Shown: piece after piece, positions 2,018 to 60,810 of the stretch
Position numbering within the stretch: position 1 is the first letter of the stretch
Layout of the letters: each line of letters opens with the position of its first letter
The notes under the pieces: generated by a model
Databases searched by the model: none
Seen by the model: the letters and a program-made list of their open reading frames with translations, nothing else
Told to the model about the DNA's origin: nothing
Made by a program: the position numbers and the translations under genes
Source: Macrostomum lignano
Lineage: Eukaryota
Assembly (NCBI GenBank): GCA_002269645.1
Contig: NIVC01001856.1
Coordinates: 165,695 to 229,694 of the forward strand
Reading direction: 5' to 3'
Length of the DNA stretch: 64,000 nt

Positions 2018-3708
2018 ACGTTGTGACAATAAATGACTTTTTTCATTGTGTAATAGATTCTTTTTGACATAATTTGATTAATTTTCCTATCTTTTCAGAG
2101 ATACAATTTATAATAGAAAATTGATATATGCAAAGATTTGTTTAAAAGCCTTATTACAAGCTTAAAAACCAGAAAGCATGAAATTTTGGCTTAAAATAAA
2201 CTTTTTTTCATGATTTTTCTACTTTACAATAACTCTTATGCATGATTCTATAAAGTGCATGCTAGGTGTATTTTCTTAGGAATGATGCATACCAACTGTG
2301 CAAAGCCAAAGCCAATGCACGCCTAAATTTTTGGCATTTACTAGATTATTCAGAGTATAGAGGGAAGAAATAGGTCTATAATAACTTAGAGTCAGTGATG
2401 AAATTTTAATAATTAGAGAAAAGTTTTGCTTTACAATATATATAAAAGAGGGAAATGTATATTCACTTATTAAAATTTAAATTTAAATTAAATTTACTTA
2501 TTTAAAAATAAGTAAATTGATAAAAAAAGCATTAAACAATTTGGTAATTTTGACTAGAGAAAAAATTAAAAAATTTAAATTTCATGCAAAATAAAGCTAT
2601 GTTCAAAGTCTTTCTAGATAAAACTAAGCCTGTGGTACAAAGAAAAAAGCTGAAGGCTATTACCAAAAGCCTCTTTAGCTTTTTATATGTAGGCCTAGGC
2701 CCTAGCCTAGCCTAGCGTAGCCTAAGTAGGTTATTAGATAGATATTCATAGAAAAATTACAATACCTAGTTAAAATTCAGCGGGTTGTGCAAGTATGATC
2801 TTAGTGAAATAGATGTATATATTCGACCTATACTAGGTCTACACAACCTGAGAAATGAGAATGAGATCATCTGTATCAGTTCTAACTTATGGTTCTATAC
2901 AATACACTAATGTCGTAATGACAATTTGGAATGAAAAAGGCCTATAAACTCAGTCATCAAAAGCTAGGCCTACATAAGGATAGTGGTATTAGCTAAGTTG
3001 AATAAGACTTTATAGATGACCTAAAGAAGGCTTAATAGACAAATGAAAAATAAAAGACTAGATAGATTTGTACTTTATGAAGGACGGATAAAAAAAGGCC
3101 TAACTTGTCACAAAAATGTTTATCAACAACAAGTCTAGATTTCGCACAAGTTTTACTTATGCTTGCCTTCCTCATTGTATAGTTTAAAAAATTCTGTGAC
3201 AGAGAATTTTGCTTAATTATATTTTACTACCTCTACAGTTCAATAAATTGTCGACTTTTGTTTTAATTTCTTTTATGAAATGGACCTAACCCCGCTAATG
3301 GATGCGTGAAATGTGGTTTAGGTCAGAACCCGAAGTCCATAAGTCGTCTATTATGTTGAGTAATCCCAGAAGCTACTTTCATTGTTTTCATTGTTGTTAC
3401 TTTCATTCAATTAGTGGCGTCATATTTCAAAATAAGTAATATACTTTTTATTTCTTAGCATTTTCAACACGTCCTCCTGTGCGAAAGGTTATTTGCTGAT
3501 TATTTAAAACGTAAATTAGTATAAGCATTATAAAAAAATAATTAAAAAATGAAAATGATAACCTGATGGCTAGACTTATTTGATTACCTTTGCTAAGCAG
3601 CATCCAATTATCACTATACACAGGACAATAGCAAACATGTCGGGAGCCACCTATTTATCGAACGGATAATTAATTTTGTAATTACGCTAAATTTGCATAG
3701 ATACAAAG

Positions 3709-3910
3709 GACAAGCGGAGGGTGCTGAAGGATTGAAGGCATGGGGAAGGGGCAAGCGGAGGGTGCTGAAGGATTGAAGGCATGCGGAAGGGGCAAGCGGA
3801 GGGTGCTGAAGGATTGAAGGCATGGGGAAGGGGCAAGCGGAGGGTGCTGAAGGATTGAAGGCATGGGGAAGGGGCAAGCGGAGGGTGCTGAAGGATTGAA
3901 GGCATGGGGA
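3709..3910. repeat. 41-bp minisatellite (about 5 units)
   Basis: Unit GGGGAAGGGGCAAGCGGAGGGTGCTGAAGGATTGAAGGCAT, identical to the 5341 array. Confidence 0.95.
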
Positions 3911-4731
3911 ACTATACACAATAGCAACATGTCGGGGCCACCTATTTGTCGAACGGATAATTAATTTTGTAATTACGCTAAATTACAAGCGGTCCTGGCC
4001 TTTTTAGTTTTTTTTCGTTTTCCCCTATCCAAATCTCTTTAATTATTCTCCCTGTCGACTGGACACACAGTCCTCGTACCCTGGGAATCTAGGCGGATAC
4101 CGCGGGGATGACACATTCCGATGAGTCGTACCCAAAGATCATATATACACAAGGTGGGCCACTCATTAATCACTTATGTGACCATAGAGGCTATAATGTG
4201 AATACATAATTTTTCACAAATTTTGCACTTGAACATAATTTTGCAACTCGCGACAGCGCGAAAATCAACTACTGAACTCAATTTCGTCAGTAGTCTCTGC
4301 AGTGCAGGGAATATAAGATCTATGGTCGTACCCTACACCACCAGCTTCCTCCATTCAAAACACCCCATCGGCGCTCTTTGTTTGAAACCATTCATGCATA
4401 AAAAAATTTCCACACCCTCCAATCCTCCTATCCATAAATTTACATTTCCACACCAATGTAAATTATAATTTTAATCTCTGTGTAAAAATTCAAAACAGCG
4501 CGCGCTTTTCGAACCTCGATGACAATGTAAATAATCAATTTGATGACCCTAGAATAAGGAAAATAGGGTAAATTATTGTTAACTTTGTCTAAATTACTGC
4601 ACACATCAATTCGATGATTTAAAAACTGCATTTAAGTAGTCAATGAAGCACGAGCGTAAGTGGAACTGATCAGTCCAACAGATAAACCGACTTGAGTTGA
4701 TTTTGATCAATTTCGATCTATTTAACCATAA

Positions 4732-4956
4732 TCAATATGTCATATTTTCGTAAACAAGGCGGCAGAGGAAAGCTAGTTTATTCGTAGTCAGTTTCAGATT
4801 GCACTGTCTAAATGCCTTCATGACGCAGTCGCCGCAGTCGTCAGGGAGCAAGATCGAACATTTAAGTGAAATACTCTTATCTGCGCAGCTGGCCTCCACT
4901 CGGTGCAGGAGTAGGCAGGCGGCTAACATGAACGTCAAGTTGAAGAGTCGAAGCAT
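4732..4956 (-). CDS. Small secreted cysteine-rich peptide, paralog A (74 aa; signal peptide + 6-Cys mature region)
   Basis: ATG at 4956 gives MLRLFNLTFMLAACLLLHRVEA|SCADKSISLKCSILLPDDCGDCVMKAFRQCNLKLTTNKLAFLCRLVYENMTY*. Hydrophobic N-terminus ending in V-E-A. Indel-free paralog at 9928-10149 with all Cys conserved. AG acceptor 2 nt upstream of the ATG in both copies. Confidence 0.7.
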   Translation of the reverse strand: MLRLFNLTFMLAACLLLHRVEASCADKSISLKCSILLPDDCGDCVMKAFRQCNLKLTTNKLAFLCRLVYENMTY

Positions 4957-5340
4957 ATCTGCAATTTGCTGCAAGAGGTGGCGATTGGTTTTATTAGCAA
5001 GATAATAAATCAATTAGTTGACAGGTATTAGAATTAAGCCGCTCACCTTTTTGGTACTCGTATTATGGTTTCCTATACAAGAGTAGAAATTTCTTCCGTT
5101 TAAATCAGGCTCTTCAAATTTAGGAATAGGAATTATTTATGTTAGTTTAGTTTTCTCGACCAAGCACAAGCAAAACTTTTATATACTGTAAAGACATTTT
5201 TGCCTGCAAGGAATGCGCAAAGCTACTGAATTGTCTATGGAAAATCCAACTTGAAAAGTTACAAAAATCGATTTTTTTCGTTTCCAAAGTTTCCTGGCCC
5301 AAGGCAAGGTTTGTTGAAATTTTTATGCCAAATTTTACTG

Positions 5341-5880
5341 GAAACGAATGGTGCTGAAGGATTGAAGGCATGGGGAAGGGGCAAGCGGAGGGTGCTGAAG
5401 GATTGAAGGCATGGGGAAGGGGCAAGCGGAGGGTGCTGAAGGATTGAAGGCATGGGGAAGGGGCAAGCGGAGGGTGCTGAAGGATTGAAGGCATGGGGAA
5501 GGGGCAAGCGGAGGGTGCTGAAAGATTGAAGGCATGGGGAAGGGCAAGCGGAGGGTGCTGAAGGATTGAAGGCATGGGGAAGGGGCAAGCGGAGGGTGCT
5601 GAAGGATTGAAGGCATGGGGAAGGGGCAAGCGGAGGGTGCTGAAAGATTGAAGGCATAGGGAAGGGCAAGCGGATGGTGCTGAAGGATTGAAGGCATGGG
5701 GAAGGGGCAAGCGGAGGGTGCTGAAGGATTGAAGGCATAGGGAAGGGGCAAGCGGAGGGTGCTGAAGGATTGAAGGCATGGGGAAGGGGCAAGCGGAGGG
5801 TGCTGAAGGATTGAAGGCATGGGGAAGGGGCAAGCGGAGGGTGCTGAAGGATTGAAGGCATAGGGAAGGGGCAAGCGGTG
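5341..5880. repeat. 41-bp minisatellite (about 13 units)
   Basis: Same unit as 3709-3910. Confidence 0.95.
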
Positions 5881-7106
5881 GTTGATAGACAACTGATAAT
5901 CTTCAGTAGCCAATCGATGCGAACGGGGGCTTCACGGAGCAAAACAGTGCCCCCCCCAAAAAAAAAATTAAAAGCAGACCAACAATCCAGAGTTTTATTC
6001 ATCCATGGTTTAACTCAAGACTAAATACCTAAGTGTATTGATATTGGTCTAACTTTTCTAAAGCAGGATGAATATACAAAATTTTATCGTACATGTACAT
6101 GAACTGTATTGTATATCGTACGGCATACTACTTTTATTGACTGTTTGTTATTTAGTACGATTTAATTAATATCGGTTTTCATGCATGTTTTAAGGCGTTG
6201 GGTCCCAATCCCAGTTAGTATCCACAGTGATACATACGACTGCCACTCTGAACCGAGCCACCAGGCCTCGTCCCTTAGACTTTGTCCGCCTCTGGATGGT
6301 GCGGTAGCTGACGTTGCGGCCAAGATCTATAGACATATCTATAGACATATCTATAGACAGCGGGCCCGGGTTGTTTGAAAGTACACGCCAGAGGCACGGC
6401 TGTCACCAGTCACCTGTGCAGGAGTACACCCGGTGAAAACTCCCACTAACGAGACGGGACTCCCGGTGTGTAGCAGACGAAGGTTCTTGACCCCAACTGT
6501 GCCAGAAATGGCCGATTAAGGGACTCTATGCGAGGCATACAAGGACAGTCAGTGCTGGAAACGAGGACTTTTGCATAGGGGGGGGGGTCTTTTACCTGGT
6601 GAGCGGTTTTAGACTACAATTCCCTCCTAAGCACCAGGATTCCAAGGGTGGATAATACGTAACGCCATCCTAATGTTTTCTCCCTCTTAGATGGGCTCGA
6701 TGCGGCAGGGGATGGGGAAGTGCAGATCCCAGGGCTCTCTCGTGGTGCACATTCTACGGGGACTTATTTAGAAGTATTTTTAATGCTATACGATTATTTG
6801 GTAAAATTCGACTTATACTCGGTGATTCTCCACTCTGATCCTCAGCTTCCATTCCGTGCCCTGCGACAGACGCACTCACTATTCACATTTCATACCACGT
6901 CCATAGTAAATAAGTAAACAGACAGAAGCAAACAAACTGAATATCTATGCCCTGAACTGCCGGCCTTGAACTTGGCCTTAACCGCTCAGTTAATTATGAG
7001 AATTAAAACGGAATTGATAAGTTAAGATTGAAAAATTAGGAGATGATAACCAACGGGGGGCGGGCTGATCATTCCTAAGGACAGCGCAACAGAAAAAAGA
7101 TACCTT

Positions 7107-8530
7107 GCTGCTGTTGTTGTTGTTGTTGTTTCCGGCCGGTCAGTCCGGGGGGCGGGTCTGTGCCCCGACCTTCTTCAGAAAGTCCACCATCCGCCTGCAA
7201 CTGTCGTTGAGCGCTTGTAGGCTCGGGTTATTGCCAAGGTGCCGGGCTCTGGCTTGTTGATGTGCACGGCAGATCTTTATGAGATGATCCTGGTCCTCGT
7301 CGGCTTCGCCGCAGTGCAGGCACGTTGGGCTGTCAGCTTGGCCGATGCGGTGGCGGTACTACTGGAGCAAGGGAGAGTGACCGGTGCGGAGCTGAGCAAG
7401 TGTAATCTCGTCTTTTCTGGTGAGCTGTCCTTTAGGTCTGGCGCCGCTGCCAGTGGTTAGGCGGTGCGTGGTGCAATGCAGGTCCGTGCTGTAATCTGCT
7501 TTGAAACGGGACTTGGCGGAGCGGTCAATCGCCGCTGTAGCCGCAGCCAGGCTGATTTAGAGTGGGACTGATCAAGAGTCGAGCCGGCTTTGACTGTCAC
7601 GTCCGCGCATTCGTTGAATTGGAGTCCAGCATGGCCAGGCACCCATTGAAGGTCAATGTGCGTTGAGGTCGAGATCGAGAAGAGGAGCTCCCAAGTCGTG
7701 CAGCAGCCCCGAGATCGCGCTTTCGCAGGGCCTTGTTGGAGGGAGAGAAGGAACGATTGGGAGTCAGTGAGGCACCTGATGCGGTTTGGCATTTGAGCCG
7801 AGTAGACGCGAATGATCGCAGAGAGGCCGAGGCGAAGGGCTTCCTCTTCGGCCTGAAAAGAGGAAGTGATGATCCCGGCTGGGCCAGTGATCTTTTCCAC
7901 TACGGTCCGGTTTCGTACAATAGTTACCCCGGTGCCGCCGCCATAGGTGCCGTCCTTAGCCGAGCCGTCCGTCCAGATCTCGACATCCGCAACCGAGAGC
8001 TGGTCGAGCGTCTCGAGGACGGCGAGTTTGCGGATGTGAGGCGGGTCCTCCTGGTTCGTGCTGTTGTTCGTGTTCCTGTAGATGATCACTCTGGACGTAT
8101 CTGTCCATGGCGGCGGTGAGAGGGTGTCTGTGGCGCGCGGGGCTTTGAGAAGGCCGGCGGCCGTGGAGACGTTGATGGCCGTGTTGCGCCAGTCTTGGCA
8201 AACGCTACTTGTTGTCCGTGAGCCCGTAGGCGCGGTCGCAAGGCGAGAGAGCGGAGTGGGCTGTCGTTGCCGGGCGGCCTTTTTGAATAGCCTAGCGGCC
8301 GTGGCTTTCGCGAGGGTCGTCAGGGGGAACAGCTCTGCTTCAGTGAGAAGGGCGTTAGTCGGCGTGGAGCGGCAGCACCGTGTGCATTGAGGCGCTTCTG
8401 CATGGTGCCTTTGGTGATAGTGGCGTGTTGGCGGAAGGTGAGCTGGGAGTTAAAGTGGACTCCGAGTAGGCGCGGATTTCGTCGAAGCAGGGCTGCTTGT
8501 CACAGTGGTTGCACGGTGGCGGCTGCAGTC
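7107..8530 (-). mobile_element. 5'-truncated, internally deleted Ingi/I-group non-LTR retrotransposon (RT thumb, RNase H, CCHC knuckle, (CAA)n tail)
   Basis: Minus strand reads NPRLLGVHFNSQLTFRQH, TRCCRSTPTNALLTEAEL, RNase H IWTDGSA..SSFQAEEEAL..LTDSQS..LQWVPGHAGLQFNECAD, then LAQLRTGHSPLL..CLHCGEADEDQDHLIKIC, followed by the (GTT)n run at about 7113-7131. Stops and frameshifts are present. Confidence 0.85.
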
Positions 8531-8645
8531 ATGGACCATCAATCCAGAAGAGACACGTCCGGGGGGGATGTTAAAGCCGAGAGAAGTTATAGCTTCGGAA
8601 ACGGAAACAGTGAAGGGTTCTCCGCTCAGGGCTCAGAAGAGCTCT

Positions 8646-8780
8646 TATTTATAGCCCTGAGATCGTGAGCCTGATGCGTGATATCGAAGGCTGTGACTTG
8701 TCCTTGACCTCCGTTACCAAGCAAACCTGATGACGTCACCCGTCAGCCGCGCTGTGATTGGACGAGAAATTGGGGTGGGA
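8646..8780 (-). promoter_or_regulatory. Pol II promoter-like cluster (CCAAT, CRE, TATA)
   Basis: Minus strand order: CCAAT (8757-8761), palindromic TGACGTCA (8731-8738), TATAAATA (8646-8653). Confidence 0.35.
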
Positions 8781-9419
8781 CGCAGCGAAGAAAAATGATT
8801 TATGAAGGGGAATTACATAACAGACAGGAAAAGGCTTGGGGAGATAGGGGTCATAAAACTGTCACACGCATGAATGATTTCGAACAATACATGTAGAAAG
8901 GAGGTGGGGTTGGTGCGCGGGGGAGTGGGGTGGGCGATAAGCATGAGTCATCGTGATCACATGGGAAGGATGTAGGGTCCGCAAAAATTAGTGGGGGCCC
9001 ATGACGTGCCTACATCAGTTTGTTAAAAATGTAGAATATCTTTCTATGAGTCGCACCGTTTCTACCCACCTTCCTCATTCTCTTCAACCACCCTATCTCC
9101 GCTCTTTGTTTGAAAATATTCATGCAGAACAAATTTTCAACGCTTCTTATCTCTGGAATGTAAATTATATTTAATATCTCTATGCAAAATTTCGAATTCG
9201 CGCGCTTTTCGAGCCTCCTTTGCTGCGACCTCCAACCCATTTTTTAGCCAATCAGAGCAGGGCTGGTGCTCAGTTGCTAGACAACGCGGTTCACAGACGG
9301 GTCACGGATGGGTCACGGACGGGTCACGGACGGGTTACGGACGGGTCACGGTTACTCTTCCACTTCTTGGACAACCAATCCAAATGCCCGCGCTACCTTC
9401 GAGTTCCCTGTGTGTATTA

Positions 9420-9670
9420 GTTTAGCTTAGAAGGAATGAGCTCTGTGTGCACCCTGGCGCACATCCGGCGAGAGGCATTGCTGCCCATTCCGCCGACTCC
9501 CCTGAGCAGGCACACAAGCGCGCGGATACGTACGCAGTCATACGCACAGGCATACACTCACACAGTGTACAGCGGCCCTAACTTTATTTATCGTTAGGCA
9601 TGTACACTTCACTGTGCCTTGGGGGTTGGCCCTCAAGCTGGTCGTTACCTGGTAATTGCACGAGCAGACA
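9420..9670 (-). mobile_element. SINE family A, headless copy
   Basis: The reverse complement matches the central and 3' parts of 28050-28240 (CACAGTGAAGTGTACATGCCTAACGATAAATAAAGTTAGGGCCGCTGTACAC..GGGGAGTCGGCGGAATGGGC). Confidence 0.75.
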
Positions 9671-9927
9671 CAACAATGAACTACAATGATCGCTTATTGG
9701 GCTTAAACTCATTTTTAAGATAGGAAAATGAGATATGAGCGTATTTATGTCAACTTTTGACAAAATTTGACACACGTCGATCCGATATCATTTCAAAAAC
9801 TGCAGTACGTAGCCAATAAAGTGCGAGTGTAAATCAAACTGAAAGTTCTACATATTCAAACTGTGTGCCTTAACTCTGATCAGTTTTGATTTATTTCAAA
9901 CATTCAAATATACGAGAGCTCATTGTC

Positions 9928-10149
9928 TCATTGTACGGTTGAATTTGCCGCATCGCAGAGAAAAGCTATTTTTCGAGACGCCAGTTTCAGATTGCACTGT
10001 TCAAATGACTCCATGACGCAGTCGCCGCAGTCGTCAGGGAGCAAGATCGAACATTTAAGTAAAATACTCTTATCTGTGCAGCTGGCCTCCACTCCGTGCA
10101 GCAGCAGGCAGGCGGATAACAGCAAGGTCAAGTTTAGGAGTCGAAGCAT
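9928..10149 (-). CDS. Small secreted cysteine-rich peptide, paralog B (73 aa)
   Basis: MLRLLNLTLLLSACLLLHGVEA|SCTDKSILLKCSILLPDDCGDCVMESFEQCNLKLASRKIAFLCDAANSTVQ*. 51/65 residues identical to paralog A up to the last Cys, same C-x8-C-x7-C-x2-C-x7-C-x12-C spacing. Confidence 0.7.
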   Translation of the reverse strand: MLRLLNLTLLLSACLLLHGVEASCTDKSILLKCSILLPDDCGDCVMESFEQCNLKLASRKIAFLCDAANSTVQ

Positions 10150-10539
10150 ATCTGTAATTTGTTGCAAGCAAGTGCCGATTGATTTATTAGCAATAGAACA
10201 AATCGACAGGAATAAGCGGCTGCCTAAAAATTTCTTTCATTTAAATTGACTACTCAAATTTTGAGGACACTGTAGATTTATAAAGATCTAACTCCAGCAA
10301 AAAAGCTAATTCTATACCTAAGGAATTTCTGAAATTCTAAATAGGAATTATCTGTGTTAGTTTAGGTTTCTCGGTTAAACACAAGCTAAGCTTCTGTAGT
10401 GCAAAAACATATTTTTGCTTGCAAGGAATGAGCAAAGCTGTCTTTGAAAAAATCCAATATGGAGAGCTACTGAAATCGATTTTTTTAGCTTCCAAACGTT
10501 TTCTGCGCTCGATGCAAATGAAAATGTTATTGGAAACGA

Positions 10540-11352
10540 AGGGGAAGGGGTAAGCGGTGGGTGCAGAAGGATTGAGGGCGTGTGCAGTGGAATAGGTAAG
10601 TGGTGGGTGCTGAAGGATTGAGGGCGTGTGCAGTGGAATAGGTAAGCGGTGGGTGCTGAAGGATTGAGGGCATGTGCAGTGGAATAGGTAAGCGGTGGGT
10701 GCTGAAGGATTGAGGGCATGTGCAGTGGAATAGGTAAACGGTGGGTGCTGAAGGATTGGGGGCATGTGCAGTGGAATAGGTAAGCGGTGGTTGCTGAAGG
10801 ATTGAGGGCATGTGCAGTGGAATAGGTAAGCGGTGGGTGCTGAAGGATTGAGGGCATGTGCAGTGGAATAGGTAAGCGGTGGGTGCTGAAGGATTGAGGG
10901 CATGTGCAGTGGAATAGGTAAGCGGTGGGTGCTGAAGGATTGAGGGCATGTGCAGTGGAATAGGTAAGCGGTGGGTGCTGAAGGATTGAGGGCATGTGCA
11001 GTGGAATAGGTAAGTGGTGGGTGCTGAAGGATTGGAGGCGTGTGCAGTGGAATAGGTAAGTGGTGGTTGCTGAAGGATTGGAGGCGTGTGCAGTGGAATA
11101 GGTAAGTGGTGGTTGCTGAAGGATTGAGGGCGTGTGCAGTGGAATAGGTAAGTGGTGGGTGCTGAAGGATTGAGGGCATGTGCAGTGGAATAGGTAAGTG
11201 GTGGTTGCTGAAGGATTGAGGGCATGTGCAGTGGAATAGGTAAGTGGTGGTTGCTGAAGGATTGAGGGCATGTGCAGTGGAATAGGTAAGCGGTGGGTGC
11301 TGAAGGATTGAGGGCATGTGCAGTGGAATAGGTAAGCGGTGGTTGCTGAAGG
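10540..11352. repeat. 46-bp minisatellite related to the 41-bp family
   Basis: Unit GCGGTGGGTGCTGAAGGATTGAGGGCATGTGCAGTGGAATAGGTAA. Confidence 0.95.
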
Positions 11353-13223
11353 ATCAGGACTGGTACTCGTAAAAACTGCGTTTACCCGCATAACCAAAGA
11401 ATGCAGAAGTCAAATGATGCTCAAACTGCTGTATGAAATGAAGTAGCAGGTGTAATGAACAAGCTGGGTAATTTCATGCTGCGCACAGTCATAATCTACA
11501 GAGAGGTAAGAACTTATATTTACGAGATTTACGTTTATTATTAGTGGTTGTTTGCCGACATCGGTTTGATTAAAACAAATGCTAAATGCGTACAATACAA
11601 TAATGGAATTAAAACTGTATTCTATAAAAGTTGTAGCTAATGGCAAAACATATGTGAGCGAAGAACAATTACAATTTTCAATAACGGAATATAAAGATAG
11701 CAGTAGACGATCAGAGATTCGGGTCCATTTCTTAGATGTCTATGGCCGAACCTCATAATTCGTAACAGATGAAAGTTTAATAAGTCATATTAAATAACAA
11801 TAATATTCTACAGCCATATTATAATTAATCAATATGCTGTACCAATAATAAATTAAGAATAAATAAATTAAAACGTTTTATTTTTTTATTAAAGATATAA
11901 GTCATTAAAATATTAGAGTATGAATCAGATCAAATTGTTTAATAATTTTGTAAATCACTGTAACAGTCGAGAAATTGAACTTAGAAAATTTACTATCAAA
12001 TCTTAATTCCATTTAGGTCCTTGTCAGTGCTAAAGAACGAATCAATTTGCACTGACTCGATAGTCTTTCTGACCATAGACAATCAGCAGGCGAATAGTAG
12101 GCTTTTACATGCAGTAGCCTAAAATACATGTAAGGTTGGCGACGGTGAGGGTGAAAAAAACGACGCCGGCAATGGCGTACGGCGACATCAAAAGGCGACA
12201 GCAAGTAGAAATGCGGCGATGATATTGGTAACGATGATTAGTGGCAGCCATGGTGACAATAAACAATCAGGTATAGTGACAATGAATCGATGAAGTCAAC
12301 GATTTTTCGAGGAACTGACGATTTGGCAGGTGGGGCAATTATAAATGATGTCTCGGTGAGACCTGCAAAAATATGAGGGAGTTCAGATATTTTATATGAT
12401 ATGAACGATAGTGCTTGTGCTGAGCGTTAATTGCATCTAGCAATAAAAATGATAACAACCTTAACATTAAAGATGGTAGTTGTAGTATTTTTCCTGTTAT
12501 TTTCAATAACCCATCTGCGTATTTACTTATTATTTTCACTCTACAGTAGGTTTGCAATTCTTTGATATTAAATTTGTTTGTTTTTACCTTACACTTCCAA
12601 CATTGCTTAATTAATTCGATAATGTTCAACAAATATTGATTCGCTTAGTTCGTCGTTTGCCCGCACCTATATAATAAAATCTTCGATTTGACGTTTTGCT
12701 CTGAAATCTTCTTATTTTCGCTCTAGAACGTTCGATATTCTTTCGATAATTAGTATGCGCGCGCCTTTTTACTTTTAAGTAGTATCGTGTGCTTATCCTT
12801 CATTCGAGCTTGCCTTTTTCGGAGGAGGGGAGGTTGTGGACGTGGACGTGGATTGCATTTTTCTAATGTGACTTAGGATTACTTTTGGAATTAATATTTA
12901 AAAGCTATATTTATTTTGACCTTATGTTTTTTTATTTTTATATTTACTGTATTATCTTATTTGGTTTATTTGGTTTATGACGACGCGTGGGTCGACGTCA
13001 ACCGGAGAGGCGGCTCAGCGTGCTTGGCTACGCCGACGACCTCGCCCTGCTGTCCTCAACTGTCGAGGGCGCCCAGCGACAACTGGACAAGCTAGTTGCT
13101 GTTGCGGCGAGTGTCGGCCTGGTGGTCAACACGCAGAAAACCGTCGTGCTCTGCGTGCCGGACGACATCGAAGCTGCGATTTTGTTCCGAGGCGCTGATG
13201 GACAGGCGACAGAGCTTCCGCGT

Positions 13224-13666: not shown

Positions 13667-14069
13667 AGAGCTTCCGCGTTTTCAGCAGTTCGTCTACCTC
13701 GGCGGTCTGGTTCCCGGTGTCCGCGAGGATTTGCGGCGTCGCCGCGGGCTTGCCTGGGCTGCCTTTCGTTCTGTGATAGCGGTCCTGCAGTCCGAGGCCT
13801 TAGCTGACCGCCAGAGGGTGGCGTTGTTCCAGGTGGTGGTCGAGACCGTCCTGCTGTACAACGCCGAGACATGGACGCTGACGGAGTCGCTCGAGCAACA
13901 AGTTGACGCGGCGCACGCTGGCCTGCTGCGCGCCGCCTTCAAGATCGGCTACGAGCGAGTGACCAACGCGGCATTGTATCGCCGCGCCGGCCTGGTCCGT
14001 CCAAGCGACCTGCTGCGCCATCGACGACTCCAGCTGGCAGGCCACATCATCTGCGCCGAGTCGTACTGC

Positions 14070-14205: not shown

Positions 14206-16089
14206 AGCTTCGATGCCCCTCCTGTTGCTGTCGACGGCCCTGCATCCAGTTCTCAATTATGCCTGAGTCCTATTCGTGTGCATTGTGCAGCAGGTATTTG
14301 GCGCATTGCTGCAAACAACCATGAAGAACTCGATGATATCGCTTTCGAAGAACAACAAAGTTCTGTGAGTATTAATGAATTTAGTGCGTCTATATCTTAT
14401 TCCCCCCTCTCTCTCTCCCCTGTCTGCCTCTTCGTCTGCCTCTTTCCCTTCCCTACTTGAATTTGTATTGTATGAATTCTTGTTCTAAATTCCTCCAGCC
14501 AGCCTCTATCCGTGGCTCACCTGACAACCCCGCTGTCTGCCGCGCTGCCCCACCTGACTGCCTCCCGGGCACACCTGACGACCTCGCTGCCACACCTGAC
14601 TGCCGCGCTGCCACAGCTGACTGCCTCGCCGTCACACCTGATAGCTTCGATTCCCCACCTGTTGCTGTGGACGAGCCTGCATCCAGTTCCCACTTGAGAC
14701 TGAGTCCTATTCGTATGCATCGTGTAGCAGGTATTTGGTGCATCGCTGCAAACAACCATGAAGAGCTCGGTGATATTGCTTGTGAAGAACAAGCCGGTGA
14801 CAATGCTGGTGACCGCCAAGTTAATGATCAAAGCGGCTATCAACATGGTGAACAAACTGTCGAGTACTGCGGCGACCAAGCCGGCTACGAACCTGGCGAC
14901 CATATCGGTGACAATTTGCATGACCAAGCCGACGAGCAAGCGTGTGAAAGATGTGTAGTTCATCCGGTTCGTCTTCGTCATGAAGCAGGTATGTGACGCA
15001 TGTCTTCAACAGTGGATGGTTGCACGGGATCTGTGGTTGGCGCGCACTACAGGGTTGCGGAAGAGAATAATAACAAGAGGGACCAAAGGCCGAGTAGTAG
15101 GAAAAGCAGTGTCAGTGGTCAAAGCATGTTTCTTCGGAGTCGTTGCAGTCACGAAGGCAGTCTTCGGTCGGAGCGCGGTTGCAAGTTGGCTGTCGGAACC
15201 TTGTCTCGGGGAGCAGGCGCGCACTCGGCGTTTCGTCGATTGCCTGCTGGCTGACGCCGGCGCCCCGGATTCGGCCGGCGGCGTGGCGTTCATTCGCGAC
15301 CTTGCCTTGAAGCGCGCCCTGAGACGCTAAATGCGTATTCTGTTGTTGTTGTTGTTATTGTTTATTAACTTTGTTTATCTATTTCCAGAAGTGTGGTCCA
15401 TTCAAACTTGTTTAGTTCTTTTTGCCATTTTCCGCGCTCTGAGTGTTACTTCTCCCGTAGGCTTGGCATCACCGTTAGTAATAGTGTCAGATTGTATCTT
15501 TGACACGCGCAGCTAGTGGGCATTGCTATACTAAAACTACGCGCTCATACTATCTAATATTAAGGTTGTTTTCATTTTTATTGCTAGATGGAATTAACGC
15601 TCAGCACGTGCACCATCGTTCATATCAACTAAAATATCTGAACTTCCTCACACACATTACCGATTCCGGAACCAGAATCGGTTCGGATCTTCCAAGAAAA
15701 AAGCAGTATTTATAACATAACTATTTAACTTTGTTGAATTTTTAAATACCAATTGACAGCCTCACTTTGCACAATTATTTAAATTTCTTCTTGGTTATTG
15801 CCATTCAATAATTAAAATATGTAATGTGCAGTACGGCATGCTAATTTTATTGACTGTTTGTTATTACTGCCCTCCCTTGACCCCGCAATGCAGTGCCATT
15901 GACAAATATCATGTTCCAGGATTTATGGCAGTAGCTGCCCGCTAATCTGCGGGCAGTTTAACAACAGTTTCACATACGAGATATAATTAGGAAAAGCTTC
16001 GTTTTCATCAAATGAAAGTGTCTATGATTACAGGGTATTAATATACTATTGAATATTTTATGCCAAATTTTATTGGAGACGAGAGGCGC

Positions 16090-17356
16090 TAAAGTACTGA
16101 GGGGATGGGGAAGGGGTAAGCGGTGGGCTCTGAAGGATTGAGGGGATGGGGAAGGGGTAAGCGGTGGGCTCTGAAGGATTGAGGGGATGGGGAAGGGGTT
16201 CAAGCGGTGGGCTCTGAAGGATTGAGGGGATGGGGAAGGGGTTCAAGCGGTGGGCTCTGAAGGATTGAGGGGATGGGGAAGGGGTAAGCGGTGGGCTCTG
16301 AAGGATTGACGGGATGGGGAAGGGGTAAGCGGTGGGCTCTGAAGGATTGAGGGGATGGGGAAGGGGTAAGCGGTGGGCTCTGAAGGATTGACGGGATGGG
16401 GAAGGGGTAAGCGGTGGGCTCTGAAGGATTGAGGGGATGGGGAAGGGGTTCAAGCGGTGGGCTCTGAAGGATTGAGGGGATGGGGAAGGGGTAAGCGGTG
16501 GGCTCTGAAGGATTGAGGGGATGGGGAAGGGGTTCAAGCGGTGGGCTCTGAAGGATTGAGGGGATGGGGAAGGGGTTCAAGCGGTGGGCTCTGAAGGATT
16601 GATGGGATGGGGAAGGGGTAAGCGGTGGGCTCTGAAGGATTGAGGGGATGGGGAAGGGGTAAGCGGTGGGCTCTGAAGGATTGAGGGGATGGGGAAGGGG
16701 TTCAAGCCGTGGGCTCTGAAGGATTGACGGGATGGGGAAGGGGTAAGCGGTGGGCTCTGAAGGATTGAGGGGATGGGGAAGGGGTTCAAGCGGTGGGCTC
16801 TGAAGGATTGAGGGGATGGGGAAGGGGTAAGCGGTGGGCTCTGAAGGATTGAGGGGATGGGGAAGGGGTTCAAGCGGTGGGCTCTGAAGGATTGAGGGGA
16901 TGGGGAAGGGGTAAGCGGTGGGCTCTGAAGGATTGAGGGGATGGGGAAGGGGTTCAAGCCGTGGGCTCTGAAGGATTGAGAGGATGGGGAAGGGGTAAGC
17001 GGTGGGCTCTGAAGGATTGAGGGGATGTGAAAGGGGTTCAAGCGGTGGGCTCTGAAGGATTGAGGGGATGGGGAAGGGGTAAGCGGTGGGCTCTGAAGGA
17101 TTGAGGGGATGGGGAAGGGGTAAGCGGTGGGCTCTGAAGGATTGAGGGGATGGAGAAGGGGTTCAAGCCGTGGGCTCTGAAGGATTGAGAGGATGGGGAA
17201 GGGGTTCAAGCGGTGGGCTCTGAAGGATTGAGAGGATGGGGAAGGGGTTCAAGCGGTGGGCTCTGAAGGATTGAGGGGATGGGGAAGGGGTTCAAGCGGT
17301 GGGCTCTGAAGGATTGAGAGGATGTGGAAGGGGTTCAAGCCGTGGTCTCTGAAGGA
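16090..17356. repeat. 41/43-bp G-rich minisatellite related to the 41-bp family
   Basis: Unit AGGGGT(A/TCA)AGCGGTGGGCTCTGAAGGATTGAGGGGATGGGGA. Confidence 0.95.
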
Positions 17357-18219
17357 TCAGTACTGGTAAATATTTGTATACATCCAAAGAAGAATAACAA
17401 AGTCAAAAGATGCTCATTAATTTTTGCTCAAAAGAATTGTTGTACAATTGTATATTCATACGGACCTTAATATGAAATGCAGTTGCAGGTGTCATGAACA
17501 GCTGCGTTTCATGTTGTTCACAGTCATAATCTACATAGGAAAGAAATTCGTATACAGAACTTAAATACGACAGAAAATACGTTTTTTATTAGTGGCTACT
17601 TGCCACTTCCTTTTGATTAAAACAATTCTAGATGCGTACGATACGAAAATTAAATGAAAGTTGCATTGAATAGAAGTTGTATTGACAAAAAATTACAATT
17701 TGCAAGGACAAAATGTAAAAATACGAGCGTAACAGCAATTTCTAAAATGTTTATGGCCGAACTTGATTATTTAAAACAAAAAATAAAATCACGAAAAAAA
17801 CAATAATAGTATATCATAATCAAATTACAATTCTTTACACTTTAGTATGCTATAATATATATTATGTACGTTGTCCGGACTCAACAGTTGTTTTTGGCCA
17901 TAGACATGATCAGTAGGCAAACAGGTTAGCTCAGACTAAATAGCTCGTACCTATAAAATATGATAGGTCAATACTGTTACGATCGTAATAAGCGTATTGA
18001 TATTGGTCTAACTTTTGTAAAGCAGGATGAATGTACAAAATTTTATCTTGCATGCACTGCATTGTATTGTTCGGGCAGTATTACGACATGCTACTTTTAT
18101 TGACTATTTGCTTTTTAGTCTGACGTCGAAGACGTCGGATTGAACATTCCAATCATTTTAAGCTAATTTTCAACCTAATCTACCACGAATGAATCTGAGT
18201 GAGTGCAGCATGTCTCAAA

Positions 18220-23183: not shown

Positions 23184-24508
23184 CTAAGTCATCGACTTTG
23201 TGACCCACCGTCTAATCGGAATGTGAGTGTACTGATGCTGGGCGTTCCAAGTCTCATCGCTCTTGTAAATCTTACAAAGCAACGAAATAAATAAAGCATT
23301 TAGAAGCACTGAGATGGCTAAAAATACGCCAAACAATATGGCAACAACATTCGGTGCAAAGCTTGGCCCTTTGACGTGAACAACGTGCAGTCTGACAGCC
23401 TTGACGACCACTTTACCTGTTGGCAAATGTACCGAGCACGACACGGAGTAGTCGCCAAGCAACGCTCCCGGAGCCACCTCCAGGAGGCCGTTGCGTGCCA
23501 GCAGATGCTCGCGCGACGCGTGCGGCACGGACCAGTTGGCGTAGGGCGCCGGATTGCTGGCACCGAGGCAGGTCAGGTACTGGCCGCGCGACAGAGAAGC
23601 GTCCAGTCGATTTGGGCTACCACTGCCACTTTCCGGTGCTGAAAAAAATGATTTCACTGGTCGTAAGTCATAAATTAGTGATACCAGCTAAAAACACTCA
23701 GCCTCATCATTAAAGTCTCACCAACGAGCGACTCCCCGATCACAACCTCCTCGCTGATGAAGCGCACGCTGATTCGGACGCTGTCTCGCTGAGAGCCGAA
23801 CACGTTTCGCGACACGCAAGTGACCAGCAGGCCGTCCAGCTCAGGATCGGCAGTCAGCTGACGGGTGTACACCAACGTCCTGTCGTCGTCGCTTGTAGTC
23901 ACGCTGCCTAGCACGGAGATGTCGGAAACGTACACCACCAGCTCCACGCTGGGGTTGGCTGTCCGTCCGGTGCAGCGAATCTCGAATGGCTCCTTGTCGG
24001 CCAGCCAGCTCACCTGGCGGCCCCGGCTGATGAGTTGCACGGTCGGCGGCTCCGGCGGCAGGCCGACAATCAGTTGACGCTCGCCAGCCACCGCCGTGGC
24101 GTTCCCCCGCTTGAATCTGGCTCGGCAGGACAGCACGCCGGAGTCGGCTGGTTGAGCCATCAGCCGGACAGTGGCGAAGTGCGGCGACAAGCTGGCCACA
24201 ATGTCCGATCGCTCGGACCAGGAGTTCAAGAGCTGGTGCTCTCCTGTACCAGCCGACGAGTTGCCACGCTGCAGCAGGATCACCGCGCGACCATTCAGCC
24301 CAATGGAGACCTCGGCGAGGTTCTCCGACTGCGGCCCGTGGCACATGACGGTCAGGCGGGAGCCCTCGAGTACCGGGCCAGCCGGCAGGGTCTCCAATTG
24401 GATTCCAATCCAGTTAGCATCCGCTGACACAGCTGCGGTCAGTGAGATGATTGCCGCAATTATACGCGTAACTGGTTTATTCATTCTCGAGGCCAGAGGT
24501 GCCAACAT
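23184..24508 (-). CDS. Type I transmembrane immunoglobulin-superfamily protein (signal peptide, 3 Ig-like domains, TM, short tail), about 413 aa, 2 exons
   Basis: Exons 24508-23722 and 23638-23184 joined by a phase-1 GT-AG intron (83 bp), total 1242 nt in frame. Paired Ig cysteines (LTVMC..VLSC; FEIRC..LLVTC; YLTC..W..YSVSC), signal-like IIAAIISLTAAVSA, TM VVAILFGVFLAISVLLNALFISLLC. Confidence 0.8.
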
Positions 24509-24934
24509 GGGCCGCTATAGTAGAACTGAAATGCTCACAGTGCTGCTGGGGCTTCTATTTATTCGAAAATCTTTTCTCTTACTTTTCTCTTTTCTCTCTG
24601 AACCATGCTTTCTAGCCACCAGCTAGCTAGCCCTCAGCTAATGAGAGGCGGAGGCTGTGGTCAGCTTATTGCGTGCACACATTTGGCTCTGCGTGACTGG
24701 GTGCATAGTTTGTTAAAATGTACACTCGCTAATAGGTACATTACGTTGTGGAAGAAGTGCATAGTCGCCATTTTCTAATAATTAGATATGCAAGCGAATG
24801 TGAAATAACTGCATGGTAGCCACCCCTAGCTTTGAAATTTATCGAACAAGAATTAAACTATACAGACAATTTTGCTCAGTCAACTAATGGTAAAACTGCT
24901 TGAATTTCCTGAGCACATGCAAGCGCGCCAATGC

Positions 24935-25168
24935 TGTACGCAGGCACGTACTCATGCACACGCTCACACAGGGTGTACAGCGGCCCTGACTGTCTAATCA
25001 GCAGACATGTACGCACTCTGTGCCTTGTGGGCTGGCCCTCATGGCTGTGAATCCCACGACAACCCCCGAGTCAATTTTCGTGCTCAAACCCCTAGTGAAT
25101 GTGACAGGGAATCGAACCCGGGGTCCTTGAGCTGCGAAACGCTGAGCTGCTCTGCCCCTAGGTGACGA
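24935..25168 (-). mobile_element. tRNA-derived SINE related to family A (different head)
   Basis: B box GGTTCGATTCC on the minus strand near 25110-25120. Shares the GTACATG..AGGGCCGCTGTACAC..TGTGTGAG block with family A. Confidence 0.65.
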
Positions 25169-26438: not shown

Positions 26439-29400
26439 TCAGGTGCCGGTGAACAGTGACACGAGTTTTTTGGGCCTCAGCCTGGCTGTCAGCATCGACA
26501 TTCGACGACGTACAGGCGCTGCGGTTGCGGTACCGACAGTGTCGTTGGCTGCCGCGGTCGTTTTTTCTGCCACTCCGACTGAGGTGGATGCGGTGGCGGA
26601 AGCGGCGGCTGTAGCGGCAGTGTCCGCTTCGTGAGCCCGCCTTGTGAGGTCTTCGATCTCCACGAGCATGGCGTCCTGCTCCATGTGCAGGTCATCCCGT
26701 TCGATTAGGCAGCGGACGAGCTCGCTGTTGTGCTCTGCGGGGAAAGCGGTGTGGGGTGGCAGATGGGTTCAGTGTGGGATAGCAGATGGGCTCAGTGTGG
26801 GATGGCCGATGGGTTCAGTGTGGGGTGGCAGATGGGTTCAGTGTGGGCAGGCCGATGGTCTCAGTGTGGGATGGCCGATGGGTTCAGTGTGGGGTGGCCG
26901 ATGGTCTCAGTGTGGGATGGCAGATGGGCTCAGTGTGGGATGGCAGATGGGCTCAGTGTGGGATGGCCGATGGGCTCAGTGTGGGATGGTAGATGGGCTC
27001 AGTGTGGGATGACCGATGGGCTCAGTGTGGCATGACAGATAGGCTCAGTGTGGGATGGTCGATGGGCTCAGTGTGGGATGGTCGATGGTCTCAGTGTGGG
27101 ATGGCAGATGGGCTCAGTGTGGGATGGCAGATGGGCTCAGTGTGGGATGACCGATGGGCTCAGTGTGGGATGGCCGATGGGCTCAGTGTGGGGTGGCCGA
27201 TGGGCTCAGTGTGGGGTGGCCGATGGGCCAGAACTCGGCGCTCTCACCCTCAATCCTGGCCAGAAGGCTGTTGTGTGCCAGCTGCAGCGCGCCGAGGCTC
27301 ATCATTTCTAGGCAGGAGGCGCCCAAGCGGCGCGACGGCGCCACGCCGAGCATCTCGGCGAGGGCGTCCCGGCAGCGCCGGTCCCTGGCGTGCCGCTCCA
27401 CCGCAAGCTGCATTCGGGCCATGGGCTCAGCCTGGGCCAGCGCCACCTGCGCTTCCGCCTGCAGCTCCGCCTGTCGGCGTCGAAGGCAACCGGCATCCGA
27501 CGCAGCGTCCCGACAGCCGGCGTCGCCACCGTCGGCCTGTTCGACGGGCGGCGGCGACGGCGGCGGCGGTGGCTCCAAGCCGAGGCTGGCGAGGAGCTCC
27601 GGCTCCAGAGGACGGCGGCTCGGTCGTAAGGGAGGTGGCGGCGGCGGCGGCTGCAGCGGCGGAGGTGGGGTGGGGGGCAACGATGACCTGCAGTCGGTGA
27701 GGCAGTCAGTCTTGCGCAGAGCTTGTTGTTGTTAAATGAGGGTGGGAAGCAAGGGGCCCCCAGATCAGCCCAAGTAGGGCTCTGCGGCTGGATCTATCTG
27801 TGGGCCATACTGCCAGGGGCATATATAGCCTGAAAGGCCACGCTTGGGACCAGGACTGGACATACCTGATTGGGGCTACGCTCGTACTAGCTTAAACCTA
27901 TGGACTAAGACAGGGGGGCCGTAGCCCAGCGGTAGCGCAGCTGCTCTGGTGTGCCAGCGACTCAGGCTCGATTCCAAGTGCAGTCACATTAATTTGGGGC
28001 TGAATTGGAATCTCGGCTTGGCTCTGCTCGTGCAATTAACGGCCTTGAGAGCCAACCCCCCAAGGCGCAGTGAAGTGTACATGCCTAACGATAATATAAA
28101 TTTAGGGCCGCTGTACACTCCTGTGTGAGTGTGTGCCTGCGTACGTATCCCCGCGCTTGTATGTCTGCTCAGGGGAGTCGGCGGAATGGGCAGTAATGCC
28201 TCTCGCCCGTTGTGTGCCTATGTCGCTTAAAGTGCGCCAGACTGCACACAACCCCCTGCCTCTAAAAAAAATGGACTAAGACACCGCCAACCCAAAGTGG
28301 AATCAGGGACGGTGCTAGGACCGAGTCCACCCAAGCCACACTTTCCACCCAACCCACAGTGCGCGCAAAAAGTTTGGAGTTTAGAAAGCGGTCCGAGAAA
28401 GCAGGACTTATTACTGTCAACTAGATGTATAGGTTATAAACTACTCTTAATTGAGTAGCTGATGCGCACATTGTTGGAAAAAAACTCCAATAAAAAATTG
28501 ATTAATTTTTCAACCTCCAACTCGCTTTCTATGAATCAGGAGAATTATTGAGCATGCTCAGCGCACGATGGACGCTGATACTCAGTCACCGGCACTAATG
28601 TATAATTGTGCCTTTTCAAATTTCATCTTAGATTACTATTCTTTTAATTTAGCATCGAGACGGCGACGGCCCCGGGACGGCGCTCCCGAAGTGCCTTCAG
28701 TTCGTCTACCTCGGCGGACTGGTGCCGGACGTCGGTGACGACCTAGCGAGGCGGCGCGGCAAGGCCTGGGCTGCCTTCCGATCTGTGCGGGCGGTGCTGC
28801 TCTCCGAGGCCCTGTCCGACGGCGCCAGGTCCCAGCTGTTCCAGGCGGTTGTTGAGACCGCCCTGCTGTACAATGCTGAGACCTGGACGCTGACCGGGGC
28901 GCTTGAGGCGCAGCTCGACGCGGCGCATGCGGCCCTAGTCCGCGCCGCTTTCGGCGCCCGCCGCGGCCCTGGCAGCGAGACAACCGAGTCCCTGTACAAA
29001 CGCACAGGCCTGACGCGGCCTTCTGCCCTGCTGAGTCAGCGGCGCCTGCGGCTTGCCGGACATGTCATCCGGGCCGAAGCCTACTGCCCAGAGCCGCTGC
29101 AGGACGTCCTGCTGTGGACCCCGCAGGGACCGCGCAGGCGTGGTCAGGGACGATCAGCCCGCTACGTCGACCGCCTTTTTGAAGATGCGCGAGCACCCAG
29201 CCAGACGGCCGGTGTGAAGCACATTAGAGACCTGGCTCTGAAACGCGCGATTTGACGCTCCCCCCTCTTGGCCACTCCCGTGGCTGGCGTGGGGCGTAAC
29301 TATTATTTTATTTATTATTTATTTATTTAATTTAGCATGCACAACATGTTACTATGTTATATTTTGTTTGGCTGTGTAGTGAAATTTTCATTTTCGTATA

Positions 29401-44988: not shown

Positions 44989-48633
<3,645 letters not shown>

Positions 48634-48747
48634 GGTAACCACTAGCAGTTTTAGCTTAGGCTGGACGGAGACGGACAGTCGGCAGTAGCGAGCAGAGCGG
48701 AACGCTAGGCGAGAGGAGATTGAAGCGAGCTGCGGGGAGGGCGGAAG

Positions 48748-49059: not shown

Positions 49060-49250
49060 GACCTAAGCTAAACTCTAATCTAAACTCAAAACTGAACTAA
49101 ACCTAAAAAACTAACTTAAAATGCAACCCTAACCTAAAACTAACCTTAACCTAAACCTAACCTAAACCTAACCCTGACCTAAACCGAATCCTACCCTAAA
49201 CCTAACCCTAACCTAAAACCTGATCTTAACCTAAACTCTATCCTAAACCA
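49060..49250. repeat. Degenerate telomere-like (CCCTAA-related) interstitial repeat
   Basis: Runs such as ACCCTAAACCTAACCCTAACCTAAAACC. Confidence 0.6.
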
Positions 49251-60446: not shown

Positions 60447-60810
60447 AGGGTCGCTGTAGCCCAGTGGTCTAGCGTGGCGCTCTGAAGTGCCAGCGGCCCA
60501 GGCTCGATTCCAAGTGCAGTCACATTAATTTGGGGCTAAATTGAAATCTCGGCTTGGCTCTGCTCGTGCAATTAACGCCATTGAGGCCCAACCCCCAAGG
60601 CACAGTGAAGTGTACATGCCTAACGATAAATAAAGTTAGGGCCGCTGTGCACTCTTGTGTGAGTGTGTGCCTGTGCGTGTGACTGCGTACGTATCCGCGC
60701 GCTTGTGTGCCTGCTCAGGGGAGTCGCGGAATGGGCAGTAATGCTTCTTGCCGGTTGTGTGACAATTTCGCTTAAAGTGCGCCAGGGTGCACGTAACCCC
60801 CCCCCTGCCT
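60447..60810 (+). mobile_element. tRNA-derived SINE, family A
   Basis: A box TAGCCCAGTGG and B box GGCTCGATTCC. Colinear with 27917-28260. Confidence 0.8.

Follow-up and report, generated by a model that had tools for sequence, protein, structure and literature searches.

Two short open reading frames (ORFs) lie among minisatellites on the minus strand of a flatworm contig, and the question they raise is whether they are a pair of genes for a small secreted peptide. The window, by which we mean the whole stretch of DNA analysed, comprises 64,000 nucleotides (nt) of Macrostomum lignano contig NIVC01001856.1 (assembly GCA_002269645.1, positions 165,695 to 229,694 of the forward strand), and it is animal nuclear DNA dense in minisatellites (61 rows of Tandem Repeats Finder output). 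An earlier note, made from the letters alone, had proposed here a lineage-specific, disulfide-stapled secreted peptide under diversification. The lack of any known family, the leader, the reading frame, the splice signals and the predicted fold all fit this proposal, but the claims of diversification and of a conserved glycosylation sequon found no support. On balance, we favour reading the ORFs as tandem paralogues, two copies of a taxonomically restricted gene that codes for a secreted six-cysteine peptide in a Macrostomum-like flatworm. The pair would be previously undescribed and is a reasonable, though unproven, gene prediction.

The two precursors and their coding frame

Copy 1 occupies 4732..4956 on the minus strand and encodes a precursor of 74 amino acids (aa; MLRLFNLTFMLAACLLLHRVEASCADKSISLKCSILLPDDCGDCVMKAFRQCNLKLTTNKLAFLCRLVYENMTY), with the stop codon at 4732-4734 and the last cysteine codon at 4762-4764. 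Copy 2 (9928..10149, minus strand) encodes 73 aa (MLRLLNLTLLLSACLLLHGVEASCTDKSILLKCSILLPDDCGDCVMESFEQCNLKLASRKIAFLCDAANSTVQ), with the stop codon at 9928-9930 and the last cysteine codon at 9955-9957. The ORFs do align without indels up to the last cysteine, as had been claimed: codons 1-65 are gapless, and 52/65 aa and 171/195 nt are identical. Codons 1-22 form the leader (4891-4956 in copy 1 and 10084-10149 in copy 2, both minus strand), leaving predicted mature parts of 52 aa (4735-4890) and 51 aa (9931-10083).

The signal-peptide-like N-terminus ending in VEA was borne out by its layout, which has n-, h- and c-regions in both copies. The n-region is MLR, the h-region runs from L4 to L17 with a Kyte-Doolittle maximum of 2.5 over 10 residues, and the c-region reads H-R/G-V-E-A, placing V at −3 and A at −1. 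Our rules for a leader asked for positive charge in the n-region, 7-15 hydrophobic residues in the h-region, and a polar c-region whose −3 and −1 residues are small. By these rules, both predicted precursors fit the description of a classical cleavable signal peptide. The mature part begins after VEA|S with the cysteine spacing C-x8-C-x7-C-x2-C-x7-C-x12-C, which is the same in both copies, and an extra, seventh cysteine sits within the hydrophobic leader of each. The six cysteines described as invariant are indeed unchanged, but this constancy alone is no evidence: at 20% residue replacement, chance would leave seven cysteines unchanged in about 21% of cases (0.8^7), which is not significant. 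The combination of features is rarer. The window holds 176 ORFs of 40-150 aa that start with ATG, counted over all six frames, and a hydrophobic leader followed by at least four cysteines occurs in these two alone, bar one microsatellite artefact.

Differences between the copies lie partly in charge. The reversals K47E and R50E noticed earlier are present in the aligned mature part, and the mature net charge goes from +2 to −2. Values so close to neutral make a classical cationic antimicrobial peptide slightly less likely. The C-terminal N-x-T sequon fared differently. NMT and NST both exist, yet they do not occupy homologous positions in the DNA alignment; aligning the ORF tails takes a gap of about 20 nt, and a tandem ACAATGAG duplication in copy 2 includes the stop codon of that copy. 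The apparent conservation of the sequon cannot be told from chance.

The ORFs stand out sharply from their surroundings. Along the alignment of the two duplicated units, identity is 32-50% until about 45 nt before the ATG, jumps there to 86-98%, and falls to 36-54% directly past the last cysteine codon. The island between these points, from −45 to the last cysteine codon, is 87.7% identical without indels, with the splice signals at one edge and the last cysteine at the other. We compared the ORF core with 300 alignment columns on each side of the island (600 in total). The core has 171/195 identical positions and 0 indels, versus 316/539 identical ungapped positions (~59%) and 9 indel events in the flanks (Fisher p = 1e-14).

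Within the island, several signals single out the sense frame. Scored against a table of 1,410 codons from the other exons of the window, it reaches −4.8 and −0.7 bits in copies 1 and 2, versus −26.8 and −13.2 for the next-best frame. The sense frame thus beats the next-best frame by 12-22 bits and the open antisense frame by 12-25 bits, and its GC content follows the order GC3 > GC1 > GC2, as in the other exons of the window. The antisense frame, which is open at 4799-5005(+) and 9923-10249(+), contains an internal ATG that both copies conserve (MTQSPQSSGSKIEHLS...). Its ratio of nonsynonymous to synonymous divergence (dN/dS) is 1.34, versus 0.64 for the sense frame. AlphaFold2, given a two-sequence alignment of the mature parts, returned a compact model of three helices (residues 4-11, 16-30, and 36-50) with a mean pLDDT of 76.5 and a pTM of 0.53. 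The antisense translation, put through the same run as a negative control, gave a pLDDT of 61.5 and a pTM of 0.25. Given its dN/dS, its poor codon score and the low AlphaFold confidence, the antisense frame was probably left open as a side effect of the sense frame. Codon usage, leader, splice signals and a foldable mature domain are all consistent with a secreted peptide.

Splice signals and the transcript model

Both copies carry a branch-like CTAAT motif and an AG acceptor 2 nt before the ATG, as first described. The conserved 3' splice region spans 4957..5001 (minus strand) in copy 1 and 10150..10194 (minus strand) in copy 2. Each region holds TTGCTAATAAA together with an acceptor, TTGCAG at 4959-4964 in copy 1 and TTACAG at 10152-10157 in copy 2. 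CTAAT lies at 4993-4997 and 10186-10190, in both cases 35 nt from the acceptor AG, and CTAAT and the YTNCAG acceptor are kept while the sequence around them is about 40% divergent. In M. lignano, cis- and trans-splice acceptors reportedly share the motif [T/C]TNCAG, and a 35-nt spliced leader (SL), which ends in ATG, is reportedly added to the transcripts of about 30% of genes (PMC8629364). The acceptors of both copies match this motif (PMC8629364).

The partner of these acceptors would differ between the copies. Copy 1 alone has a candidate cis-splice donor, AAAG|GTGAG (5042..5046, minus strand), 90 nt upstream of the ATG, which would define an 88-nt intron in the 5' untranslated region (5'UTR). 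Upstream of the copy 2 ATG no GTRAG donor was found, so trans-splicing or another first exon would be needed there. The window contains no SL RNA gene. Since neither ORF has a canonical GTRAG donor inside it or just after it, the stop codons of both are probably genuine.

Other transcript signals are of a simpler kind. TATA-like boxes, which are consensus matches only, occur at 5178..5187 in copy 1 (GTATATAAA, minus strand, about −229) and at 10275..10285 in copy 2 (TTTATAAAT, minus strand, about −133), and the two do not align with each other. A polyadenylation-like AATAAA lies at 9890..9895 (minus strand), 33 nt past the copy 2 stop; the homologous site of copy 1 reads AAATAG. The conserved TTGCTAATAAA (4990-5000 and 10183-10193, minus strand) also holds an AATAAA besides CTAAT. 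In principle, the conserved AATAAA at −39 could end the transcript of an operon cistron lying further upstream; as no conserved upstream ORF is present, we did not adopt this view.

Three strongly conserved non-coding blocks lie 170-330 nt upstream of the ATGs (5126-5283 and 10339-10493, minus strand; for example AGCTTTGCNCATTCCTTGCANGCAAAAAT and CGAGAAANCTAAACTAACA), and these may be promoter or 5' exon elements. Blocks of this kind bear on the possibility that the island itself is a conserved non-coding element, for instance a regulatory stretch or a non-coding RNA exon, which is open in two frames by chance. Nucleotide conservation in the island extends to synonymous sites, as such an element would have it. 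Its predicted folding, however, is no better than that of shuffled sequence (z = +1.6 and +0.4), no Rfam family matches it, and no tRNA was found. The island also opens with splice signals and an ATG and has frame-specific coding signatures. We consider a non-coding element quite improbable.

Searches for relatives and comparison with known peptides

If the pair encodes a known kind of peptide, profile searches should be the place to see it, and we take their negative results as the actual test of family membership, with the comparison of cysteine patterns secondary. Neither copy has a Pfam match at the gathering score. The only match, DUF2195 over the leader of copy 1, reached 15.6 bits against a cut-off of 25, and copy 2 had no match at all. 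A word-index search of 5.8 billion clustered proteins returned no homologue, and an exhaustive HMMER search over 1.84 billion representative proteins gave none that we accepted. We judged the sole HMMER match (P0020, E = 5e-7) spurious, its score being summed over six repeated stretches of one weak segment. From its CCG motif, P0020 reads as a tetraspanin-like protein with internally repeated segments.

Other collections gave the same picture. Among the PDB sequences, no related chain was found at E <= 10 apart from chance similarity (best E 1.4, the unrelated hnRNP Q). Foldseek found no PDB fold with E < 1 (best 2.3), a comparison with little power for a helical model of 52 residues. A metagenome DNA scan contained no homologue, look-ups of the exact products of both peptides returned no recorded product, and the peptide motifs had no match in a literature string search. 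These motifs and a 24-nt core of the DNA were likewise without a match in the searched supplementary files of the M. lignano seminal-fluid screen (PMC5977470). The Pfam, protein, PDB sequence and fold, and metagenome searches thus agree with the initial impression that the cysteine spacing belongs to no known family. No similarity of the ORFs to transposable element (TE) proteins was seen in Pfam or HMMER. As a control, we used an exon of a neurolysin-like gene in the same window, and it has no match above 57% identity in the same databases. Genes of the source species are therefore evidently absent from these collections, and the missing matches of the peptide are uninformative on its expression.

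By its spacing, the cysteine framework fits none of defensin, ShK, Kazal, saposin, insulin-like, CHH and three-finger peptides. ShK-type (ShKT) domains, which are common in secreted invertebrate proteins, share with the pair six cysteines, a small and partly helical domain and the first spacing, C-x8-C. ShK ends in C-x3-C-x2-C, whereas the pair continues with x7, x2, x7 and x12, and no Pfam ShK match appears at E <= 0.1. CHH/ITP and insulin-like peptides are also secreted, helical and six-cysteine, and CHH even has a C-x2-C pair. In CHH, however, this pair is Cys2-Cys3 of a peptide of about 72 aa, and an insulin-like peptide requires two adjacent cysteines (CC) and chains laid out as B/A. Neither cysteine arrangement is found in our pair, and there is no Pfam or PDB match to either group.

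The nearest architectural analogues appear to be Aplysia attractin and the Euplotes Er pheromones, in the sense that the pair may work like them. Both are small, helical, disulfide-stapled, water-borne pheromones. They are made as secretory precursors with a cleaved leader, have mature parts of about 40-58 residues, and are lineage-restricted with fast-evolving surfaces. Their six cysteines, three disulfides and all-helical fold resemble what is predicted for the peptide pair. The cysteine spacings are different, though, and the conserved attractin motif is missing from the pair.

Closer to the organism are the secreted orphan gland proteins that are common in Macrostomum, which are alike in having short ORFs and signal peptides and often no BLAST homologues (PMC5977470). 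Among the prostate-limited transcripts of M. lignano, which are putatively seminal-fluid (Mlig-pro1-76), 31/76 have no BLAST hit, and 38/65 predicted proteins have signal peptides (PMC5977470). No sequence relation between Mlig-pro1-76 and the peptide pair was found in the searched supplementary files (PMC5977470).

Duplication, gene conversion and a possible role

Each ORF belongs to a larger duplicated unit. On the minus strand the order in a unit is a minisatellite array (41 or 46 bp), a junction, about 390 nt of 5' flank, the ORF, and a diverged 3' flank. Unit 1 (4341..5884, minus strand) contains the 3' flank, the ORF, about 390 nt of 5' flank with the conserved blocks, and a 41-bp array at 5350-5878. 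Unit 2 (9066..11115, minus strand) is about 71% identical to unit 1, has a 46-bp array at 10549-11354, and carries a dispersed repeat inserted into its 3' flank at 9456-9668. A third, partial unit (16049..18119, minus strand) consists of an 84-bp array (16098-17357), the common junction and the upstream flank, without an ORF. A tblastn search for the further paralogs that the earlier note had suggested found only the two copies within the window, with no third. Weak low-stringency matches near 11780-11812 and 17527-17751 fell in AT-rich, non-coding DNA and were discarded, and no degenerate ORF copy lies below the arrays at 3711-3911 or 16098-17357.

The arrays at 5350-5878, 10549-11354 and 16098-17357 are related to that at 3711-3911. 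The latter, a 41-bp array, is flanked by near-identical direct repeats of about 80 nt (3613-3706 versus 3916-3996), which look like the footprint of an insertion or of duplication-mediated spread. The dispersed repeat inserted in unit 2 is about 210 bp long and has copies 75-90% identical at 9456-9668, 28023-28218(−), 60559-60759(−), and 24908-25041(+). Between units 1 and 2 there is a 5'-truncated fragment of a non-long-terminal-repeat (non-LTR) element with an RNase H domain.

This setting invites the idea that the ORFs represent a single exon within a larger gene, or a piece that a minisatellite-carrying TE has picked up or given rise to. The module of minisatellite and junction occurs four times locally, once between the direct repeats of about 80 nt, TE fragments adjoin both copies, and conservation ends abruptly at the last cysteine. 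Against this idea, the arrays also occur without an ORF, the ORFs resemble neither TE nor other proteins, and the predicted N-terminal signal peptide marks the true start. The tails offer no GTRAG donor and are followed by no conserved ORF. We regard this origin as very improbable.

A more serious question is how the island came to be so similar in the two copies. Substitutions fall at codon positions 1:2:3 in the ratio 12:3:9 (n = 24), so that the second position is spared (chi-square p = 0.07). In the sense frame, dN/dS is 0.64 overall, 0.43 in the leader and 0.80 in the mature part, all from 24 substitutions in one pair. The proposal that the peptides are under diversification finds no footing here, as 0.64 overall and 0.80 in the mature part are indistinguishable from neutrality or mild constraint. 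Synonymous divergence (dS) is 0.19, far below the divergence of the flanks, and the central ORF positions 89-137 (49 nt) are identical in both copies, synonymous sites included. The low dS and the identical block speak for gene conversion more than for selection that could be measured. The simplest reading of the alignment is that gene conversion homogenised part of the coding segment, and the evidence for selection acting on the protein is weak.

The same observations could be explained if the ORFs were unexpressed chance or decayed frames in a locally triplicated, repeat-rich segment, with the 240-nt island as a recent ectopic gene-conversion tract. Low dS, the unchanged block, the non-significant dN/dS, the open antisense frame, the missing homologue and recorded product, the third unit without an ORF, and the minisatellites and TE fragments all around would be expected or tolerated under this explanation. 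A random tract, however, is not expected to start at branch and acceptor signals and to stop exactly at the last cysteine codon. The leader, the six cysteines, the best codon usage of the six frames, the spared second positions and the AlphaFold contrast with the antisense translation all agree on one frame. The missing matches say little in this respect, as the neurolysin-like housekeeping gene itself shows at most 57% identity. Unexpressed, converted frames are the main rival to the gene reading, and we consider them unlikely, but worth keeping in mind.

Several points nevertheless weigh against the secreted-peptide gene pair that we favour. The ORFs are embedded among minisatellites and transposon debris, and one of the units lacks an ORF. 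Signal-peptide cleavage is a prediction by rule. The dN/dS of 0.64 is not significantly below 1, and the codon-position skew reaches only p = 0.07. With dS so far below the flank divergence and 49 central nt identical down to the synonymous sites, gene conversion makes the island no clean measure of constraint at the protein level. No homologue or recorded product was found in any collection searched, so selection can be tested on one pair only. The antisense frame is likewise open across both ORFs. No promoter-like box or donor is common to the two copies. The ATG of the spliced leader, if joined to these acceptors, would be out of frame and open an upstream ORF of 6 or 8 codons that overlaps the start; this mildly favours cis-splicing or else speaks against efficient translation.

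Elsewhere in the window, the exons of the neurolysin/thimet-oligopeptidase-like gene used as a control span 45871-48642 (minus strand); they are large, and their best database identity is 57%. Two introns of this gene are mostly or partly minisatellite (46382-46665 and 47663-48186). A SPRTN-like gene, whose ORF had no exact match in a look-up, follows at 49952-51199 (minus strand), and between the two lies an interstitial telomere-like array (49131-49236) of TTAGG and TTAGGG units with the consensus AACCTAACCCTAACCTA. A weak, sub-threshold Ig-like ORF is at 23675-24508 (minus strand). Non-LTR fragments are found at 7105-8500(−), 28722-29255(+), and 13686-13940, and comprise an RNase H with a Cys/His C-terminal segment and an (AAC)n tail, and C-terminal fragments of reverse transcriptase. 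The one at 28722-29255(+), a reverse transcriptase fragment, shares 92% identity over 83 aa with a UniRef entry from Macrostomum lignano, and the other named TE matches of the window likewise come from M. lignano. Taken alone, these transposon matches would suggest, without proving it, that the source is Macrostomum or a close relative.

For the secreted-peptide gene pair, we propose the following course of events. Splicing of the pre-mRNA would use the conserved YTNCAG acceptor, whose AG lies 2 nt ahead of the ATG. For the upstream partner, copy 1 may use a short 5'UTR exon, and a spliced leader added in trans is the alternative. The 22-residue leader would send the precursor into the endoplasmic reticulum and be removed by cleavage behind VEA. 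What remains, a mature peptide some 43-52 residues long, may then fold into a compact bundle of three helices, held together by three disulfides from the six cysteines, and would be secreted to act outside the cell. With near-neutral charge, amphipathic helices and surface charges that vary between the copies, it would be better suited to binding or signalling, for instance as a gland secretion, a seminal-fluid protein or a pheromone-type ligand, than to disrupting membranes in the manner of cationic antimicrobial peptides. Once the segment had been duplicated locally, constraint and gene conversion may have kept the coding segment alike while the C-terminal third and the tail diverged. A bolder step is to see the pair as founders of a macrostomid-restricted family, with a new six-cysteine framework on a three-helix, triple-disulfide scaffold, made in glands (for example prostate, adhesive or epidermal) and acting as a fast-diverging extracellular ligand of the seminal-fluid or pheromone type. 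We offer this only tentatively and hold it with less than even confidence.

If the ORFs are not expressed, the locus is merely a gene-converted duplicate within repeat-rich DNA. If the gene pair is real, its novelty would be moderate, as a new family inside the familiar class of orphan cysteine-rich secreted peptides. The known secreted peptides of invertebrates would still gain a new arrangement of cysteines and a small scaffold of helices joined by disulfides. Annotation pipelines routinely miss short orphan secreted genes, and the pair would be an unannotated example from a flatworm that serves as a model in work on regeneration, bioadhesion and sexual conflict. With their charge-swapped surfaces, the tandem copies would then offer an entry point for the origin and divergence of new secreted ligands.

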